Assembly: GCA_946965045.2 (NCBI GenBank)
Contig: OX337232.1
Span: 434,001 to 498,000, forward strand
Origin: Epithemia pelagica
Taxonomy: Eukaryota > Protista > Bacillariophyta
Length of the DNA: 64,000 bases
Direction: 5' to 3'
The first letter of the stretch is position 1, and each line of letters starts with the position of its first letter. Shown here piece after piece: positions 40,939 through 51,472 of the stretch. The notes beneath the pieces are model-generated. The model ran no database searches. It had not been told where the DNA came from and worked only from the letters and a program-made list of their open reading frames with translations. The position numbers were made by a program, and so were the translations under genes.

Positions 40939-41317
40939 TGTGATGATGTACTTGGTAGTAGCTGTTCGCCCGAACAGTTCGAAGATCGATTGTCGTGATT
41001 TTGGTTTTGTGAGACCAAAGGATCTCTCCAACGGGTAACCTATTCAGGAACATGATGGAAGAGCACGATAGAGCATGGTAGAACATGTGTACCGAATCTT
41101 GCCCATGAAGGATGCGATCTTTTCCCAGCGAGAATCAGCGACTGAAAACTGAAGGCGCCGACGCCCGACGCACACCACATCACAATTTCGTGGCAGACGA
41201 AATTGAAAGCGCCCTAGTTTCTGCCCCTTTAAAGATACTTTCTGCTGTCTCGTAGCTTTTGTACTGAGCCTTACGCACCAGAAAGTGTGTGGGGGCCGTA
41301 TCGGAACGCCGACGACC

Positions 41318-43453
41318 ATGGCCGATCCTCCTCCTGCTGCTGCCGCTTCCACAAGAGCCAATGATGCTACTATGTCGGATAACAACTCTAGTGTTCAGTT
41401 TCGCAACACCGATACGACAAACAGGAATGACAATCGCGCTTCTAATACAGAGAAACAACACAGCGCCACCGACGACGATGATGCAAGTGCAGCAACGGCA
41501 ACGACAACACACCAACCGATTGTGTATGAGGGTGATGAAGAAGAATATACCATTAAATTTGTGTTTCGTCCACAAGACGACCAAGCTAACAATCAAGTCG
41601 CCAAGCATCATTATGCCATCTTACAGATCATCGCAAAGGTGTATCCTGAAGTAAAGATTTACGATAACCGTGGAGCACACCTGAAGGCGAAAAGGATCGA
41701 GTCATTGAAAACTTACTCTGCGTATCTACGTCACTTCGATTTGCATTATTCTAAAGGCAACAAGAGCAAGAATCGATCTGCGATCTATGTGGTGATACAT
41801 CGATTTTTATCGCGAATCCCAATTAGTGAGGTCAGAAAACATTTCTCGGTGCAAGAAAAACTGAAATCTGGTGCCGCGAAAATGACAAGGCATATGTGGA
41901 GAGAAGACGAAACGAGAATCTCAAACCTTGGATTCTTTGTTGGGTACGACCCAAGCAACATTTTACCAGAAGACACGCATGACATAGTCGAGAACAAGAT
42001 CATTATCCAAACAGGCACTCCCAAGAAAAGGATTCCTAAATTCCGTTGCAATTACTCTTCCCCAATTCTGTACGACAAGGATACAGACGATAAATATGTG
42101 ACGAAAGCGTTCGATCTCCAGTGCCGGCAAAGCGACGCCAAAGCACTTTTGGATATTCTTCACGCAACCTATGTTGCAGATCCAGATTTTGTTTTCCATC
42201 GATCAAGACACACTCACAAGCAATTATACATCAACGCCATGAAGGAACAGAATGCCTATCTACGTGACTGTCGAATCATTCCCATTGCAGGTATACATCC
42301 CACCATTATGTGGACCTTGGGCGACAAACTATGCGAATTTGAAGGCGTGATACGTGTCACAAAACATAAAGACAGCGACTTGAAAGGACGGTTCAATGTG
42401 CATACAAGTGAACCACATTTCAATGCTCTGAAAGGACGGTTTAGGAGAGAACTAGCATCACTTGTCCAATTTGAGAAGAACAACCAGAATTTGAATCCCC
42501 AGCCATATGAAGATGGAGGACCGAGACTAGCTTTCAAGATCAATAATCAAGGCGAAGAAGAAGACGAAGAGTCAGGAAACACATCACACGCAGGCTCTTA
42601 TGCGACCTACATGACTGCTATGAATGAAAGATACGCCAGAGCAGCAGAAGAATCAGATGAAGGCTCGCTAACAAGCCCACCGGTGTCAACAGGACCAGTT
42701 ACTCAGGCATGGACAAGTAGCGTACCGATCCAAACTGTTGTTACATCTAAGACCGATTATTCAATCAAAAGCCAAGTGAGTCAAGAAGAATATGATCGCA
42801 TGAAGACTGATCTCACCTCCAAAGTCGAAGAAGTAGAAGACAAATTTCGCGCGTTTGTGGAAGAACAACGAATTAAGCAAGATCAAGAACGTGATGCTTT
42901 AGTACAGTCCATTATGGCAGCAGTTCAACAACAAGTTGCGGCATCAATTCAACAACAGATGCAGATGCACCCAACATCGGTCCCTTTCTATCCACAACAA
43001 CATCCACCACAACAAGTACATCATCAGCAACAACTATCAAACGCTCCAGGTCACCACCATCCGGGCATTTACCAAACTCCTCAAAATCAAATGATGCCAC
43101 CACCACCGATACCACCACAACAACAGTACAATCCTCACCAAATGACACCACAATATCAGATACAAAACCAACCAAGCTCGCCAATACAGCCTCATCAGCT
43201 CCACCCAATGGATCATGAACCTGCAACCGGACTTTACAATCAGGACCAACAACAACAACATACTGCAAACTACCAACAACAAATCAACCCTTCGAATAGG
43301 AGCAACAACGAAATGGGTCAACAGCCAGCGAGCGACCCCCAGCAGCAGGCCACGCCAAATCTCGACGTGAGCATGGTCCAACCAAACTCGCCCTTGCAAG
43401 CGGACGGGTCGTTGGCCGACAGAAGCATGTGTAGTCATGAGTCGAAATCTTAA
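41318..43453 (+). CDS. LINE ORF1 (711 aa) with a coiled coil and a Gln/Pro-rich C-terminus
   Basis: ATG at 41318; overlaps the ORF2 start by 17 nt. Confidence 0.85.
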   Translation: MADPPPAAAASTRANDATMSDNNSSVQFRNTDTTNRNDNRASNTEKQHSATDDDDASAATATTTHQPIVYEGDEEEYTIKFVFRPQDDQANNQVAKHHYAILQIIAKVYPEVKIYDNRGAHLKAKRIESLKTYSAYLRHFDLHYSKGNKSKNRSAIYVVIHRFLSRIPISEVRKHFSVQEKLKSGAAKMTRHMWREDETRISNLGFFVGYDPSNILPEDTHDIVENKIIIQTGTPKKRIPKFRCNYSSPILYDKDTDDKYVTKAFDLQCRQSDAKALLDILHATYVADPDFVFHRSRHTHKQLYINAMKEQNAYLRDCRIIPIAGIHPTIMWTLGDKLCEFEGVIRVTKHKDSDLKGRFNVHTSEPHFNALKGRFRRELASLVQFEKNNQNLNPQPYEDGGPRLAFKINNQGEEEDEESGNTSHAGSYATYMTAMNERYARAAEESDEGSLTSPPVSTGPVTQAWTSSVPIQTVVTSKTDYSIKSQVSQEEYDRMKTDLTSKVEEVEDKFRAFVEEQRIKQDQERDALVQSIMAAVQQQVAASIQQQMQMHPTSVPFYPQQHPPQQVHHQQQLSNAPGHHHPGIYQTPQNQMMPPPPIPPQQQYNPHQMTPQYQIQNQPSSPIQPHQLHPMDHEPATGLYNQDQQQQHTANYQQQINPSNRSNNEMGQQPASDPQQQATPNLDVSMVQPNSPLQADGSLADRSMCSHESKS

Positions 43454-46400
43454 CATACCGGAGATTAACAACTACATAAACCACAATCATCACCATTTCG
43501 CAACTATGCCAGAACCTACACAACAGGAAGATTTTCCTGATCAATTATTTCATGACACACTCCACCACAATTCAAGCACACAAGAAACATTCAAATTCGA
43601 CGCACCAATTGGAATACCATCACAAGAAAAAGACGATAACACTTTTCGTGTATTTGGGAGCAATCCCAATGGACTAACTCTGGGGCATGATGGAGGAGAC
43701 TTCGCAGAGCTATGTTTGGAAATGAGTAACTCGCAAGTTGACACATGGTGCATCTATGAAACAAATCTAGATACAACACAGCACAACGTGAGAAACAAGT
43801 TACACAATACAATACGGAAACATACAGAACACTCGCGCATTGTCTACGGGAGTAGCTCGATTTCAACAGTAAGAGGACGAGCTTATAAACCAGGAGGGAT
43901 ACTACAAGTCACACAAGGTCAGACTACTGGACGAGTAGTGAAACAGGGACAAGATTCTATGGGAAGATGGGCATATCAAGTGTTTTCGTGCAGAGGTCAT
44001 AAAACTTTGACGGTGATTACTGCTTATCAAGTTTGCCATCAGACGTTAATCGATGAAACAACGCAGAGGAGGCGCTCCTTTACCGCCTCGGCACAACAGG
44101 TTTCAATGCTTCGACAAATGAATCGCACGTGCACTCCTAGAGAGGCATTTATCCAAGATCTAGGAGCTTTCATCCAAGAAAGAACCGCTTGTAACTCCGG
44201 TATTCTATTAATCGGTGACTTCAACGAAGCACTCTCAGACTCCTACTCAGGCATGTCAAAACTATGTTCCGACAATAACTTACAAGATCTCATGTGGCAA
44301 ATACTCGGGACTACTGACTTTGGAACCCACGCAAAAGGCCGAGAGAGAATCGACTACGTCTTGTGCAGTGATTGGGTGGCTGCAGCTGTCAAGAATGGAT
44401 ATTACGAAGCATTCGGATACCGCCCAAAGGGAGATCACCGCAACATCATGATAGATTTTGATATTGAAAAACTCTTTGGAAATCGCACTCAACCACTGGG
44501 ACCAATCTCCAGTCGGAATTTCACGAGTCAAGACAAATCTTCCAACAGGAAGTATATTGAAGCGAAGCATCGATACTGTCGTGATCACAATTTCAGACAA
44601 AGACTCGCAGCCTTACAAGAAGAATGGAACCCTGATGAAGCTGAAAAACTGGACAAAGATTGGCAACGAGCTGGCGAGTACGCTGCGAAACAATGTTCCA
44701 AAAAGCCCAGGAGTGTTCCTTATGTTGCTGAACTGGCTGAATTGCGACAGCGTAAGAACTTATTGCTGAAACTGATCTCCGCTGCCAAGCTGAACAAGTC
44801 CTTCGACGCTGGCATCGCACATCTGACAACAAATGGTTACCAAGGCGGATTCCCTTCAACAATGACAGAATGTCAAACAGAATGTCGAGTCACACAGCAG
44901 AAGATTAAAGCTATGACAAAGACAGCTATATACAGAAGGCAAAACGAACTCAAGATAGCCTTACAAGAAGCGATTGATTGTGGAGACAAACAACAATCAA
45001 AAGCTCTCAAGCACAGGATTTCAGCTGAAAGAACAAAAGCGATGTACGCAAAATTGCGGCAATGTCGTGAGAATCCAAAGGCCGGAATAACAAGATTGGA
45101 CGTTCCAGCAGACAGTACGAACACTGATTACAACAATTGCTCTAGTTGGATCACCATCGACACTCCATCGGAGATCGAAGAACGTCTACTTCAGCGTAAT
45201 CGCAAACACTTTGGACAAGCTGATGGCACTTTTCCAACCACGCCTCCGTTTTCGGAGTGGTGTGACTGGGGAGCGTCGACGCATACGGCCGAACTGATTC
45301 TTGAAGGCGACTGGCAATCTGAGGAGTTGACTGACTTGCAACAATGCCTGATCAACCATATGAAAGCGCGAGTTGCACTGGACACAATCTCGAGTACAAT
45401 AAGCACAGAAGAATGGGTGGGAAAAATTCGCTCGTGGCCCGAATCTACAACAACTTCTCCATCTGGCTTCCACCTTGGACATAGTAAGGCACTCATCTCT
45501 GGACACGATCTTGATCCCAAATCACACGAAAGCGAATTACTCGAGCAACAAAGATCTGAGTTAATCGAATGGCAAGTCGCTCTACTGAATTGCGCCTTAT
45601 CCAACCAATATTCCTTCACAAGATGGCAGCACATAGTGAATGTCATGATTCTAAAAGAGCCAGGCGACTTGAGAATTCACCGCTTACGTGTAATCCATCT
45701 CTATGAACAAGATTACAACCTTGTTCTGGCTATCAAGTGGCGAAAAATGATTCAGCTATGCACCAATCAACAAGCGTTGCATCCTACACAATTTGGAGGT
45801 GTTCCTGGACGTGATGCTATAATCCCGACTCTTTGCGAAGAGTTTCAGTATGAAATATCAAGAGCAAGCAAACGACCGCTCGTCCATCTAGATTACGACG
45901 CCACTGCGTGTTACGATCGGATCATTCTTTCGTTTGGCAGTTTAGCCTCAAGAAGCTTCGGACAGAACAGGTCAATTGTGTTCATCAACGCGCGAACACT
46001 CGAACAAGCGAAGTATTATTTGAAGACACAATTAGGGGTGTCAGAACGCTTTTATAAGCACTGTACCTTATACCCTATCTACGGCTCAGGACAAGGCGCA
46101 GGGAATTCTCCGGCGATTTGGTGTGTGGTGTCCAGTATTCTCTTTGAAACGTACGAGAAAGGTGCCCATGGAGCTTCTTTTGAATCACCAGATGGTTCTG
46201 TTAAAACAAAGGTGTATATGATTGGATTCGTCGACGATACGAGTGGAAGTGCCAATGACTTTCGCCGCCCATCTCGTGCTCCTCTCACCCATTATATTTC
46301 CAAGGCTCAAGATGACGCCCAACGGTGGAATGATGTACTTGCCTTGTCTGGTGGTGCACTGAACCCCCAGAAATGCTCATACCATTTCATGTACTATGAC

Positions 46401-47666
46401 TTTAGTATCGACGGTCTTCCTTTGCTTCAAGCCGGTACATTTGGCCCAACTATCACAATCACTTTTAATGATGGCGCTCAAGGTTCACAACTGACCCAGT
46501 TGTCGGCGTACAAAAGTCACAAGACGCTCGGAGTTCAGAAATCGCCTCACGCTACCAACAAAGGTTTATATTTCGCTTTGGCTAAACGCAACAACAGTCA
46601 CACAAGGACCATGGCTCGCAGTCCCTTCAACAGGACTGATGCGTGGGCATACTACCACGCTATCTACTTGCCCAGTATGTGCTACCCATTTCCTTCCTCA
46701 ACTATCTCGGATGCATTTTGCACAGCACTTCAACGCCAATTCAAGAAAGCTTTCTTACCCAAATATGGCTTCAACAGAAACATGCCAAACGCTGTGGTTT
46801 ATGGACCGTCTGAACTTGGCGGGATTGGTCTTCGTACTTTATCTGTCGAACGTGGCATAGCTCAAGTCTACCACTTTCTGGCTTGTATCCGCTCCGAAGG
46901 AGTTCAACATCAACTTGCAAAAATCATGGTCTCTTGGGGCCAATTTCTCGCTGGCACTGGAATTCCTGTTTTAGAAGACGTGCACACGATTCTACCGCAT
47001 ATGGAGCCAATGCAATGGCTACCTCAGATGCGCACCTTCCTATCTACAGTTGATTGTCGGATCGAACTAGAGCAGACATTTGTCCCAGATCTTCAACGGG
47101 AACAAGATTCTTTTTTGATGGATTTGGCTCTTACCTTTACCACGTCTCCAACAGACTTGAAATTGATTAACGCTTGTCGTCTCTACCTTGGAGTGACTTT
47201 TGTCAGTGACATTTCTAGCCCTGAGGGGTCAATCATCACTCGTTCTGCATATGACGGTCGTCTGGACATTCTCACGCAGCATCGCGGCCTTATCCCATAC
47301 CAACGAAGACCTGGTCCAAAATCCTGGACAAAGTGGCGTAATTTCCTAAACAGCCTTCTCAGCTCTACTCACGATCGACGCTTGAACCAACCACTCGGCA
47401 AATGGTACTTTGGTGGATCGTCTACCTTTCGGAATTGGTTATCTTATCTCGATCGTCCGTCCTCCCGTCTTTTTGTCGCTGCCCCAAACGGTCAATGGTT
47501 AGAATATCCCTACTATGGCATGGCTTTTTGGCCAACTACAACGTTGCATCACTCCGTCCCACCTACTGCTTGCCCAGCTCAGACTCTTTCGACTGGTCCA
47601 GCGAAGATTCTGTCCTCAAGTCACTACGTGTTAGCGCGCCCCATTACACCACGCCAAGCTCTCTGA
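43437..47666 (+). CDS. LINE ORF2: AP endonuclease and reverse transcriptase
   Basis: SNPNG, YETN, IGDFNE, RIDY, DHR (APE); RIHRLRVIHL, QFG, DATACYDRI, GSGQG..NSP, FVDD (RT). Confidence 0.95.
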   Translation: MSRNLNIPEINNYINHNHHHFATMPEPTQQEDFPDQLFHDTLHHNSSTQETFKFDAPIGIPSQEKDDNTFRVFGSNPNGLTLGHDGGDFAELCLEMSNSQVDTWCIYETNLDTTQHNVRNKLHNTIRKHTEHSRIVYGSSSISTVRGRAYKPGGILQVTQGQTTGRVVKQGQDSMGRWAYQVFSCRGHKTLTVITAYQVCHQTLIDETTQRRRSFTASAQQVSMLRQMNRTCTPREAFIQDLGAFIQERTACNSGILLIGDFNEALSDSYSGMSKLCSDNNLQDLMWQILGTTDFGTHAKGRERIDYVLCSDWVAAAVKNGYYEAFGYRPKGDHRNIMIDFDIEKLFGNRTQPLGPISSRNFTSQDKSSNRKYIEAKHRYCRDHNFRQRLAALQEEWNPDEAEKLDKDWQRAGEYAAKQCSKKPRSVPYVAELAELRQRKNLLLKLISAAKLNKSFDAGIAHLTTNGYQGGFPSTMTECQTECRVTQQKIKAMTKTAIYRRQNELKIALQEAIDCGDKQQSKALKHRISAERTKAMYAKLRQCRENPKAGITRLDVPADSTNTDYNNCSSWITIDTPSEIEERLLQRNRKHFGQADGTFPTTPPFSEWCDWGASTHTAELILEGDWQSEELTDLQQCLINHMKARVALDTISSTISTEEWVGKIRSWPESTTTSPSGFHLGHSKALISGHDLDPKSHESELLEQQRSELIEWQVALLNCALSNQYSFTRWQHIVNVMILKEPGDLRIHRLRVIHLYEQDYNLVLAIKWRKMIQLCTNQQALHPTQFGGVPGRDAIIPTLCEEFQYEISRASKRPLVHLDYDATACYDRIILSFGSLASRSFGQNRSIVFINARTLEQAKYYLKTQLGVSERFYKHCTLYPIYGSGQGAGNSPAIWCVVSSILFETYEKGAHGASFESPDGSVKTKVYMIGFVDDTSGSANDFRRPSRAPLTHYISKAQDDAQRWNDVLALSGGALNPQKCSYHFMYYDFSIDGLPLLQAGTFGPTITITFNDGAQGSQLTQLSAYKSHKTLGVQKSPHATNKGLYFALAKRNNSHTRTMARSPFNRTDAWAYYHAIYLPSMCYPFPSSTISDAFCTALQRQFKKAFLPKYGFNRNMPNAVVYGPSELGGIGLRTLSVERGIAQVYHFLACIRSEGVQHQLAKIMVSWGQFLAGTGIPVLEDVHTILPHMEPMQWLPQMRTFLSTVDCRIELEQTFVPDLQREQDSFLMDLALTFTTSPTDLKLINACRLYLGVTFVSDISSPEGSIITRSAYDGRLDILTQHRGLIPYQRRPGPKSWTKWRNFLNSLLSSTHDRRLNQPLGKWYFGGSSTFRNWLSYLDRPSSRLFVAAPNGQWLEYPYYGMAFWPTTTLHHSVPPTACPAQTLSTGPAKILSSSHYVLARPITPRQAL

Positions 47667-49198
47667 GCGAACATATGGCTCAACTATCTTCTTGGGAACG
47701 GTCCCTCTGTACACAGTGCACTGCTCTGTGCTCAACTGATGATCTCGCTGCATTTCTACAATCGAGTTCGCCACTGTTGGTTAGCAGTGATGGTTCTGCT
47801 GGTTCCTTTGTTGGCACATTTGGCTGTGTTTGTTCCACTGACACTGGACAGCGACTATTTCGACTTCATGGTCCTGCGCCTGGTTATAAAACGTCTTCAT
47901 TCCGTGCGGAAAGCTACGCTTTCTTAGCCATCCTACGGTATCTGATACAATCGTGCGAATTTCTAAGCTGTGTTCTCCCTATCTCTCTTCAGATGTTTAC
48001 AGATTCTGAAAGCTTGGTCAAGACGATTCAGAAACGGATGGAATGGTTCGTTGAGTTTCCATATTCCACAATGACAGCAGATTGGGACTTACAACAAGCA
48101 ATTTCTCGGTCGCTCCGACAGTTTGTAAACTTTCCTCATATCTGTCATATCAAGGGCCATCAAGATCAAGAACAAGCATACTCAACTTTACCGCTGCCAG
48201 CTCAACTCAATGTCGACGCGGATCATGCAGCTTCCGATTATTCTTATCCTTCACGTGTTTCTCCGCGCCTTGCACCTATCACAGCTGGAAGTCACGCGTT
48301 GCTTCACAGTGCGGACGGATCTATTAACTCAAATTACCGTGCTATTCTGCGCAGATTGGCTACCTCCAAGACACTCCGCGAATACCATTGCATCAAATAT
48401 GACTGGTCCGATGCCGTGTTTGATTCTGTTGATTGGACTGCTCATGGTCGAGCATTGAATTCAAACTTTTCTCGTCGCATCTTTTTGGTAAAATTTCTCC
48501 ATGACTGGCTCCCTTTGGGCTACCTGAAATCGCGATACGCCGATTATTACGACGATACCTGTCCCCTTTGTTCTAATACTCTCGAGACTCGGTCTCATTT
48601 CCTTCAGTGTCCCAACCGGGACTGGTTCGACTCTCTTGCAGACGATCTCCGGTCGAAATGGCATGACCTTGAGTTCGATCCCTTTCTTCGGACTTTGCTT
48701 CTGGAATTTCTCCGTTCGTTTCTCCTCAATACTACCCCTTCTTTTCCCCCTTTACCTCATGCATACCAACGTGCTATTCTCTCACAGCTCACAATCGGGC
48801 AGGAGCAACTGTTTCTTGGTCGTTTCCCTTCACAATGGGCACATCTCCAAGACGCCTACTTACAACGCGCTTCTCTCTCTTCTCCGTTCTTCTCTGGCAC
48901 TCGTATCATCACCGCTACCATCAATATCATATGGCTTCATGTGTACAATCTCTGGCTCCGCCGTAATCAAGATCTTCATGGTGATTCCCCCGAAACTATT
49001 GAGACTGCCGATTATGCTCAAGCTAAGCGCGAAGTCCTCGCCCTCTACGCTCTCAAAGATAAAGTTCACGCTTCCGATGTTATCCTTTTCTATGACACTC
49101 CGGAACTCCATTTCTCCATCGACACTACCTCACTCGCTCTTCGCCACTGGCTCAATACATGGCGACCTGTTATACTTCGGTCTGCTTCTCCCCCGTGA
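47640..49198 (+). CDS. LINE ORF2 C-terminal part (RNase H and CCHC), separated from the RT frame by a -1 shift near 47636-47642
   Basis: SSDGS, SFRAES, FTDSES, HIKGHQD, NVDAD (RNase H); CPLC..ETRSHFLQC. Confidence 0.85.
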
Positions 49199-49307
49199 TT
49201 TCTTACATCCCAAAGTACTGTTAGTCCTCGCCTAGTTTTCTAGGCCGGGCGCGTCGGTCGACGGTACCCTAGCGGGTCCGCGCGGCAGCGTTAAAATAGA
49301 CAGTACC

Positions 49308-49339
<32 letters not shown>

Positions 49340-51472
49340 CGACGCACACCACATCAACCGTGGTTTTAGGATAGAGTGAAGCCAAAAGTCATAGTCATCC
49401 ACTCATTCCATTGTCGCTCTCGTAATGTCGATTCAAAGACACAAATTTATCGCCCTTTCGACAAAGTTCAGCAACCTTTCCAAAAAGGACGACGACGACA
49501 CCGACGATTTGAGAACGGTTCGATCGAGTACCACCAGCAGTGTTGGCCCCGTCAATGCTTGACAGTCCTTGTTTTTCTTTTATTACAAGAAAAATGTTTT
49601 TCTTGTATTACAAGAAAAACAATGACTGTCTAGCTTTGACGGAACCAACGCTGCTCATGCTCATGCTGACAGCACGCCTCATCAGACCAACAGGTCAAAT
49701 GCTGTCCGAGGAAAAGGAACCGCAATCCCAGTTTGTGGTGCTGCTGAAGCTGAAGCTGCAAACAACCCAGATGGACCCAAGAATGTCAAAGAAGGGAAAG
49801 CCGCCAAGGACGAAATACAAGAGAGACGGGTTCATCCGTCCAGCGGGAACAGGAGCAAAATGCCCGTGTCGCATTTTGTTCAGAAGAAAAATGAAGAACG
49901 ATCGCAAAAACAAACAAACAAGAAGCAGCTTCGTCGTTAAAAAAAACGAGGAGAATCCCGAGCACTATTAACAAGGATCTATGTGGGACGAGAATAGCAT
50001 AAGAAAAGAAAGAATAGGGATGAAAGTACAACGTGATCGAGTACTGGGATTTAACAGTAAGGAGAGCGCATCTTTGGGTATCGTGACATGTGGTGTAGCA
50101 GTGAGCGTAATATTTCTTGTATCCTTGACAATGAAAGCAAGAATCATGTCTTCCTGTTGAAACGGCTCCTGGAACGGAACGAGCCACAGCCCTGGCGCTC
50201 GTGAGTTTGGTTTGGGGAACCCATACGAGGACACGACGATCTGCGAGAGTGAACGTCCACCAGCCTCTTTCTGCTCCCATTTCTGTCATCCGCAAGCCAG
50301 CCATTGGGAAAGGATACGCACCAAACCAATGCTGGAGCGCTTCCAGTCATGCTCAGGCTCGGACTTTTGATTGTGGTGAGGGAAACCACTTGATGATATG
50401 CGAGAGGACACGTCTCCAATCGGCCAGTGACCTTGAAGTTCTTACCATTCTCCTCGCGGCAACGAACCATGGAGTTCTTGGAATCATATTATGCACCTCC
50501 TTTTCCTGATCTCGTTCCGTGCACACGACCAAGTGCCGCGCGAACGATTGTGCATCTCTTGAAAACCTCAAACGAGGAGAATCGTGCACCGTGGAAAAGA
50601 GATGCGTTGTTGGCGTAGGAATGGCGTCTCGGATCGAGCACAACACTCTTGGTTTGTAGAATGCACGTTCCAGAATCCTTTCCGTGCGTGGCGTTCCTCC
50701 AAAGGAACATGCAAATACCCGACTGCGATGAATGTGGTTCTCTTCCAGAGAGAAGAAGAAACCAAACACTCTGGATCGACAAATATCGGCACAGCGTCAC
50801 TTAGTTTTGGCACATCTCGTCAAAACCTCAAACGATCGTGCGTGGAAATTTCTCAATGACATGCAACGCTTACCACGGACATACCGGCAGACTACGCGAT
50901 CGAAACGTCATATTGGGAAAGTTTCGTAGGGAAATCGAGTCCTCTCAATCAAGAGTTTGGAAACCAGAAGAAACGAAACGGATTGGAATAACCACAAGGA
51001 CACATTAATACATTTGCTCACTTCGAACATGGATTGGCAGGAACAAGTGCGGTTGTCAGGCCTAGTGTCTGACATTTGCGCGACAATAGAGAAAGGAGAA
51101 CGATGACAACACCGACGACAACTCGAATAATAATATCCAAAGAGAATGCCTCTCATATTCTGCAGGAATCCATTCTATTTTAGACTGTTTTGGGACAATG
51201 ATTCTTCCGCTCACACCCACTCACAAGCTACTTTAGCTCGGAATCAACAACCACAGCAAACGGTCCAAAAGGAGGAGATATTCTCCAGGACACAATTCTC
51301 GTCATCATCATCATGATTATCCTCCTCATACGTCTCTTGGGAGGGGAGCCTGGACGGAATCGGTTTGAATTCCAGAATCCAGACAGGTTTTTTTTCCTTC
51401 TTGGGAACAATGTGTGTGTGTGTGTTTTGGATTTTCTTGGGAGACAATGTGTGTTGTTCGAACGTGGCTTGC

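Follow-up and report, generated by a model that had tools for sequence, protein, structure and literature searches.

The element and its 3' end

We examined a window of 64,000 nucleotides from the diatom Epithemia pelagica (GenBank assembly GCA_946965045.2, contig OX337232.1, positions 434,001 to 498,000 of the forward strand), in which a full-length retrotransposon without long terminal repeats (non-LTR) ends, on its sense strand, in a run of 26 T residues. The element is a long interspersed nuclear element (LINE): it encodes a reverse transcriptase (RT) domain with an APE-type endonuclease N-terminal to it, its copies are flanked by target-site duplications (TSDs) of variable length, terminal repeats are lacking, and 5'-truncated copies keep the 3' end. 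The features that delimit the element and make up its 3' end, including the structured part of the 3' untranslated region (UTR), are the following, in window positions:

41166-41182, + strand: 5' copy of the TSD, 17 bp, exact repeat of 49340-49356
41183-49339, + strand: full-length non-LTR retrotransposon, 8,157 bp, bounded by the TSD and with Pfam matches to APE and RT
49222-49289, + strand: folded segment of the 3' UTR, with four helices in nested hairpins, as modelled by RNAalifold
49290-49300, + strand: conserved single-stranded box GTTAAAATAGA, with ATAGA invariant in alignment A3
49308-49339, + strand: 3' tail, TTT CTC followed by T26, 32 nt and T-rich, read directly
49340-49356, + strand: 3' copy of the TSD, 17 bp, exact repeat of 41166-41182

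The + strand at the end of the element reads ...GTTAAAATAGACAGTACC, TTT CTC, T26 and then CGACGCACACCACATCA, so that the whole of 49290-49356 is GTTAAAATAGA CAGTACC TTT CTC T26, followed by CGACGCACACCACATCA. The T26 run itself occupies 49314-49339, between the 3' UTR and the second TSD copy, and is the sole homopolymer of at least 10 bases in the window. The TSD 17-mer CGACGCACACCACATCA has 2 exact matches in the window, against a chance expectation of 0.02. Neither the 5' flank GAAGGCGCCGACGCC nor the TSD is T-rich, and the two TSD copies are identical and both lack the T run, from which it follows that the run is not target DNA; as it lies between the body of the element and the second TSD copy, it therefore arrived with the element. 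A search of the assembly for the predicted empty site gave no match, and the argument for an element origin thus rests on the TSD. Overall, the T26 run belongs to the element as its 3' tail, and a first-pass annotation of the same DNA, which had placed the run between the 3' UTR and a 17-bp TSD and had ascribed it to the element on the ground that the target is not T-rich, was right on both points. Moreover, because the tail is made of T and not of A, it does not derive from polyadenylation.

We then looked at the other members of the family in the genome. A search of the 60.5-Mb assembly with the 27 nt that directly precede the tail (GGCAGCGTTAAAATAGAYTGTWCCTTT), allowing at most 3 mismatches, returned 95 sites, compared with 0 in a reversed control; 40 distinct copies, the window copy included, were read, and 55 sites were left unread. 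All 40 carry a T run, and none ends in poly(A), as would be expected of an L1-like, relaxed LINE. Counted from the CC that precedes it, the tail is 4 to 32 nt long, with a median of 9, the longest being that of the window copy; in the 39 others, the homologous position holds T4 to T23. Copies with the exact motif and at least 15 T number 3 genome-wide. Fifteen copies have TSDs of 11-20 bp, each of which starts directly after the T run, and the variable-length T tails adjoining TSDs for which the first-pass annotation had proposed to look are thus present in other copies (T4-T32), with no instance among the 40 of a copy ending in A or without the run. The lengths bounded by TSDs are 93, 98, 167, 2,260, 2,509, 3,814, 4,336, 5,419, 6,144, 7,721 and 8,134-8,410 bp, the 5' ends defined by the TSDs coincide with the ends of homology, and one half of the 40 copies measure less than 1 kb. 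The run is retained in 5'-truncated copies as short as 93 bp and thus sits where reverse transcription starts, and the combination of truncation, TSD and T end is the signature that target-primed reverse transcription (TPRT) leaves when it starts at the T end. The T tail is, in sum, a heritable, family-wide trait.

Additional information on the start of reverse transcription came from the bases at the junctions. In 10 of the 15 insertions in this genome, a T directly precedes the TSD (9 of 14 before copy L042 was added, p = 0.003 against a T content of 26%), and the TSD begins with T in all three related elements from other sources that have TSDs. Since T precedes or starts the TSD in most insertions, the primer in most cases has a terminal A, which is able to pair with U. 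Variants of the tail start recur in separate copies (CCTCT twice, CCCTT twice), indicating that the start of the tail is inherited from the template. In addition, neither shared 3' flanks nor 3' transduction was found among the 40 copies.

Some individual copies deserve a description of their own. Viewed as candidates for a partner SINE (short interspersed nuclear element) with the same 3' tail, the short copies (58-190 bp) have scattered start positions and resemble 5' truncations; L028, L042 and perhaps L043, of about 90-100 bp, begin at or beside one nucleotide (GTCCTCGC), where the first hairpin of the 3' UTR has its base, a common start that could be due to chance, to a preferred RT stop or to a processed RNA end. 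At L034:9512-9670 (G000:C1:~3979000-3979170), the 3' end of one subfamily with T9 lies 58 nt upstream of the 3' end of another subfamily, also with T9, a tail-to-tail arrangement that would fit the insertion of one copy into the other's 3' UTR region. Two candidate duplications were rejected, namely a 12-bp 'TSD' of L036, which is a divergent copy with a nested insertion, and a 25-bp match of L042 located 5.4 kb away, which belongs to a repeated flank, the true TSD being a local 16-mer around the 93-bp copy.

The folded 3' UTR and the tails of related elements

The RNA structure of the 3' UTR was modelled with RNAalifold on an alignment of 10 sequences, taken from the E. pelagica genome and from five relatives. 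The model contains 20 pairs, 12 of which show compensatory changes; 94.4% of the alignment cells are paired, as compared with 79% in column shuffles and 34-51% when the partners are slid, and none of 500 shuffles reached the observed covariation values. The 3' UTR thus holds a conserved RNA structure supported by covariation, as in stringent LINEs of the UnaL2 type. The structured part is followed by the box, which is found, as such or as a near variant, 7-12 nt ahead of the tail in most of the relatives read, and the box, the spacer and the tail are all predicted to be unstructured. A UCCUCGC motif is also present in the 3' UTR. Pairing of the purine-rich (A-rich) box with the U tail was considered and rejected, as the folding energies were no better than those of shuffles. 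An Rfam scan of 41100-49400 gave no family at E<=1; a ribozyme like that of hepatitis delta virus was discarded for this reason, and because the nested hairpin model accounts for the covariation.

The 3' ends of related elements were read from genome and metagenome contigs, at RT identities of 40-63%. Most share one layout, consisting of a GC-rich folded 3' UTR, a box near TTAAAATAGA, a spacer of 7-12 nt and a tail. The tails themselves are of several kinds:

Epithemia clementina: pure T, T8-9, with a 12-bp TSD
L053: pure T, T13
L055: pure T, T9 CG TTG T7-8, with a 14-bp TSD
L105: pure T, T9
L107: pure T, T8
L110/L111, two sites of one element: pure T, T7 and T9
L063, L071, L086 and L090: (TTTTG)n
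L080, L081 and L084: (TTTTTG)n
L099: (TTTG)n
L083: (ATTGT)n
L076: (TTC)n
Nitzschia inconspicua: (TTA)n, with a 19-bp TSD
L064 and L065, two sites of one element: (GTTA)3 and (GTTA)4
Six insertion sites of one TARA element: C2 to C6
L067/L069, one lineage: no repeat

The LINE with oligo(C) tails (L056-L062, from TARA and other marine metagenome contigs; 45% RT identity) ends in ...GACATTTAA and then C2-C6. Logan contigs end inside the 3' UTR and were uninformative on the tail. As in stringent LINEs, the number of terminal repeats varies between insertions, from T4 to T32 in the E. pelagica family, between T7 and T9 and between (GTTA)3 and (GTTA)4 at two sites of one element each, and from C2 to C6. 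A maximum-likelihood tree built on the RT domain places the elements with pure-T tails in three groups, all with good support (the E. pelagica family with Epithemia, 100/100; L053 with L055, 95/91; L105/L107/L110, 100/100), and these are interleaved with other tail types; the unit of the tail thus changes readily within a T-rich theme, the homopolymer being one of the forms that it takes. T tails are not general in the wider clade, whose T-rich repeats are lineage-specific. In view of the repeat tails of the sister lineages, the contrast that had been drawn between the T tail and the short tandem repeats of other LINEs does not hold, and the T tail is better described as a special case of the latter.

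Possible origins of the T tail

Terminal repeats of this kind have been described in other LINEs. In UnaL2, the 3' UTR carries a stem-loop and (UGUAA)n, and reverse transcription starts in the terminal repeat, with template slippage demonstrated (PMC1636434); a review covers stringent LINEs whose tails are (TAA)n and (TGTAA)n (PMC3747384). As the wider clade has lineage-specific T-rich repeats, the mechanistic reading shifts to templated slippage. Stringent LINEs have simple-repeat tails, and the T tail is probably the version of these with a unit of one nucleotide, an encoded U tract being copied with slippage at the start of TPRT. The element RNA would comprise the folded 3' UTR, the unpaired box (UUAAAAUAGA), a spacer of 7-12 nt and a short encoded U tract. 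We infer that the ORF2 protein would bind the folded 3' UTR, that the target would be nicked, preferably leaving a primer with a terminal A, that cDNA synthesis would begin within the U tract, and that slippage on this tract would give each new copy a T run of different length (4-32 here). Templating is needed in the sister lineages, because multi-base repeat tails of variable number can only be made from a template, and the predominance of A-ending primers, the recurrence of variants at the tail start and the precise stop of insertions at the T run, without transduced flank, also support slippage. The proposal of the first-pass annotation that the T run implies a U-tailed RNA is consequently retained in part: among the routes it listed, an encoded U tract with slippage is favoured, and terminal uridylation is not required.

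Several points weigh against templated slippage. The T at position -1 could reflect a preference of the endonuclease instead of base pairing, and deriving T26-T32 from typical T8-T12 parents requires much slippage or later microsatellite growth. The oligo(C) tails of one related lineage would also be expected from untemplated addition. Two copies, of different subfamilies and the sole cases in the genome of a T run joined to a G run, are not explained by slippage on the template and hint at untemplated addition: the full-length copy L003 has T9 directly followed by G15 (L003:1938-1985; G000:C10:2188115-2188162), and L016 has T5 directly followed by G12 (L016:1877-1917; G000:C16:2863967-2864007). 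For neither of them was the downstream flank found to be duplicated as a TSD, the 5' flank of L003 lying outside the DNA read, and they may represent untemplated addition or an atypical insertion route. Moreover, the 3' end of the element transcript is deduced from genomic DNA, and 3' transduction, which would be a sign of read-through transcripts, was seen in none of the 40 copies.

An alternative to templated slippage is that oligo(U) at the RNA end serves as a priming platform, in a mirror image of L1, with the nick leaving an A-ending primer to pair with it, and with the oligo(U) tract either added post-transcriptionally by a host uridylyl transferase or represented by untemplated dA that the element's enzyme adds to the primer. 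To this general possibility we give limited weight, and each of its two forms can be confronted with the data. In the form that relies on the element's enzyme, RT would add dA, and rarely dC, to the 3'-OH of the target, and the resulting oligo(dA) would pair with the terminal UUU of the RNA and prime the cDNA, so that the T run of the sense strand would be the complement of an untemplated primer extension. Terminal-transferase activity is known for non-LTR and group II RTs, tail length differs widely among close copies, the related lineage has variable oligo(C) tails, and the G12-G15 runs that lie past the T run in two copies would correspond, on the cDNA strand, to dC being added first and dA afterwards. 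However, those two copies lack TSDs and look atypical, untemplated addition could not produce the tails of (TTTTG)n, (GTTA)n and (TTA)n found in sister lineages with the same 3' architecture, and the above-chance frequency of A-ending primers suggests pairing with an existing U tract, with no need to build one; we thus consider this form rather unlikely. Host uridylation, in which an RNA ending near ...GUACCUUU would be oligo-uridylated by a cellular terminal uridylyl transferase (TUTase), the U tail then being the priming site as poly(A) is for L1, would suit a homopolymer of variable length and the enrichment of a primer-terminal A, and L1 mRNA is indeed uridylated by TUT4/7 (PMC6191937). 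Nevertheless, in that sole studied case uridylation restricts retrotransposition and does not support it (PMC6191937), a TUTase cannot make the templated multi-base units of the sister lineages, C interruptions such as those in the tails of the window copy and L010 are unexpected from a pure uridylyl transferase, and nothing seen generates the precise RNA 3' end that would be required (in Rfam, neither a ribozyme nor any other family matched at E<=1). This form therefore appears unlikely, and more so than that involving the element's enzyme.

The remaining explanations fare worse. It is very improbable that the run was not made at insertion, be it as prior target sequence, as an assembly artefact or by pure growth of a microsatellite after insertion. 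Assemblies are prone to errors in long homopolymers, which can also grow by replication slippage, and the T26 of the window is the longest in the genome, so that its length may be partly secondary; yet both TSD copies are without T runs, and the tail is found at the same position in 40 independent copies and in relatives from other genomes. As accounts of the existence of the tail, these options are refuted, even if the exact length of the window tail may partly result from later microsatellite growth. Transcription by RNA polymerase III (Pol III), with the RNA ending in the oligo(U) of a T-run terminator, can be practically dismissed. A T run is a Pol III terminator and poly T is among the tails of short interspersed nuclear elements (SINEs) (PMC8825457), and the T-tailed plant SINEs resemble the diatom element in that their sense strand ends in poly T. 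Those SINEs are, however, short Pol III transcripts in which the T run is the terminator, whereas the diatom element is 8 kb long, protein-coding and interrupted by internal T4-T6 runs. Its 8.1-kb sense strand has 26 such runs (21 T4, 4 T5 and 1 T6), no fewer than A runs, because of which Pol III would stop early, and its two long open reading frames (ORFs) need translation.

Among better-known LINEs, the element behaves like a stringent one with a simple-repeat tail. UnaL2 and ZfL2, the L2-clade stringent LINEs of fish, likewise have a conserved 3' UTR structure followed by a terminal repeat of variable number. They differ in that their unit is TGTAA, as opposed to a single T here and other T-rich units in sister lineages, in that the diatom LINE, known from sequence, has a conserved unpaired TTAAAATAGA box between the structure and the tail, and in that their proteins have no detectable family-level kinship with those of the diatom element (no PDB or Pfam link beyond generic APE and RT). 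The I factor and other LINEs with simple repeats, e.g., (TAA)n, share with it an ORF2 of the APE, RT and RNase H type and a short-repeat 3' end (PMC3747384), but the diatom LINE ends in a pure pyrimidine homopolymer on the sense strand. With human L1 it has in common TPRT, TSDs of variable length, 5' truncation, a homopolymer tail of variable length and a possible primer-tail complementarity of 1-2 nt. Unlike in L1, the tail consists of T and not of A, the primer tends to end in A and not in T, and the conserved, structured 3' UTR points to specific, not relaxed, recognition; U tails, moreover, inhibit the retrotransposition of L1 (PMC6191937). Ambal and RTETP are listed as non-LTR clades found only in protists (PMC4438587, PMC4455052). 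Our literature search found no paper on a LINE with a sense-strand T tail, only poly T at target sites or in SINEs, but the spelling 'poly(T)' and Repbase entries were outside that search, and an earlier record is possible.

The 3' tails of LINEs tell how an RT finds its own RNA and starts on it, and the present clade, associated with diatoms and combining one 3' UTR architecture with T, C or T-rich multi-base tails, offers a natural series on what sets the repeat unit. It also opens questions on slippage at homopolymers and on whether A-U pairing between primer and tail matters. The evidence at hand does not reveal a new RNA-tailing pathway, as the T tail, unusual as it is, can be explained by an established mechanism; if, on the other hand, the oligo(U) platform were true, uridylation, which restricts L1 in humans, would be a step on which a diatom LINE depends. 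In practical terms, annotators who seek poly(A) or known microsatellite tails will misplace the 3' ends of these LINEs in diatom genomes, and T runs beside diatom genes may be LINE tails.

Coding regions and neighbouring sequences

The remaining features of the element are its 5' hairpin and its coding regions:

41184-41204, + strand: 5'-terminal hairpin, AATTTCGT / loop GGCAG / ACGAAATT, a perfect 8-bp stem read directly
41318-43453, + strand: ORF1, about 710 aa when counted from its first ATG (start at GTG 41285 in the ORF list)
43437-47666, + strand: N-terminal part of ORF2, 1,409 aa, with APE endonuclease and RT assigned by homology from Pfam matches
47640-47666, + strand: frameshift splitting ORF2, near 47650-47660, located by alignment to the homologue P0002
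47654-49198, + strand: C-terminal part of ORF2, with RNase H-like motifs and a Cys/His zinc-binding segment (third listed ORF, 47402-49198)

The 5' end of the window element, CAATTTCGTGG..., is also found in the full-length copies L039, L044, L037 and L045, which the 5' hairpin likewise opens, in some of them after 1-2 additional bases. ORF1 has no Pfam match, and its counterparts in relatives, of 550-800 aa, lie at the equivalent position. ORF2, whose start overlaps the end of ORF1, gave a weak Pfam match to Exo_endo_phos and a weak one to RVT_1 (E 5e-5, under the cut-off) in the window copy; among relatives, RVT_1 passes the cut-off in P0034 and Exo_endo_phos in P0062 (29.8 bits vs 24.5). 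The search for ORF2 homologues returned 658 at E<=1e-5, the majority of them from diatoms and aquatic metagenomes. Sequence and profile searches of the PDB gave no significant match, so that the element could not be placed in a clade by way of solved structures.

The N-terminal part of ORF2 is 87% identical to residues 1-1405 of P0002, a protein of 1,920 aa, and residues 85-596 of the so-called ORF3, read in a different frame from ORF2, align with residues 1407-1918 of the same protein. Relatives generally have a single continuous ORF2 of 1,900-2,100 aa. Judged from this alignment, 'ORF2' and 'ORF3' together make up a single ORF2 that a frameshift has broken, and the window copy is not fully intact; the first-pass annotation was correct in placing all ORFs on the + strand, and its three ORFs are ORF1 and a frameshifted ORF2. 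The frameshift sits between the RT and the RNase H-like/zinc-finger part, and the copy is otherwise well preserved. The C-terminal part of ORF2 probably comprises an RNase H-like and a zinc-binding region: the former is suggested by the motifs SSDGS, AESYA, TDSES, GHQD and DADHAA and by the name that one source gives to P0091, with no Pfam RNase H match to this part, and the latter by a weak zf-RVT match in the relative P0062.

A copy located at L029 (G000:C9:372845-375924) and G000:C9:366692 is 99% identical to the window copy at the 5' end, starting 7 nt in. It is about 93% identical farther 3' and stops at the equivalent of window position 48922, hence without 3' UTR or tail. Three copies, L041, L036 and L031, are interrupted by unrelated DNA at 127, 570 and 658 nt from their 3' ends, respectively. 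The junction of the interrupting DNA reads ...GAAAGAATTGTAA(CA) in L036 and L031 and ...AAGAGAATTGTAATA in L041, which suggests that another mobile element has landed in these LINEs. Finally, an inverted repeat, long and imperfect (CAGTCCTTGTTTTTCTT ... AAGAAAAACAATGACTG) and with an internal near-duplicate of TTATTACAAGAAAAA, occupies window positions 49563-49630, approximately 220 bp 3' of the insertion and outside the LINE.

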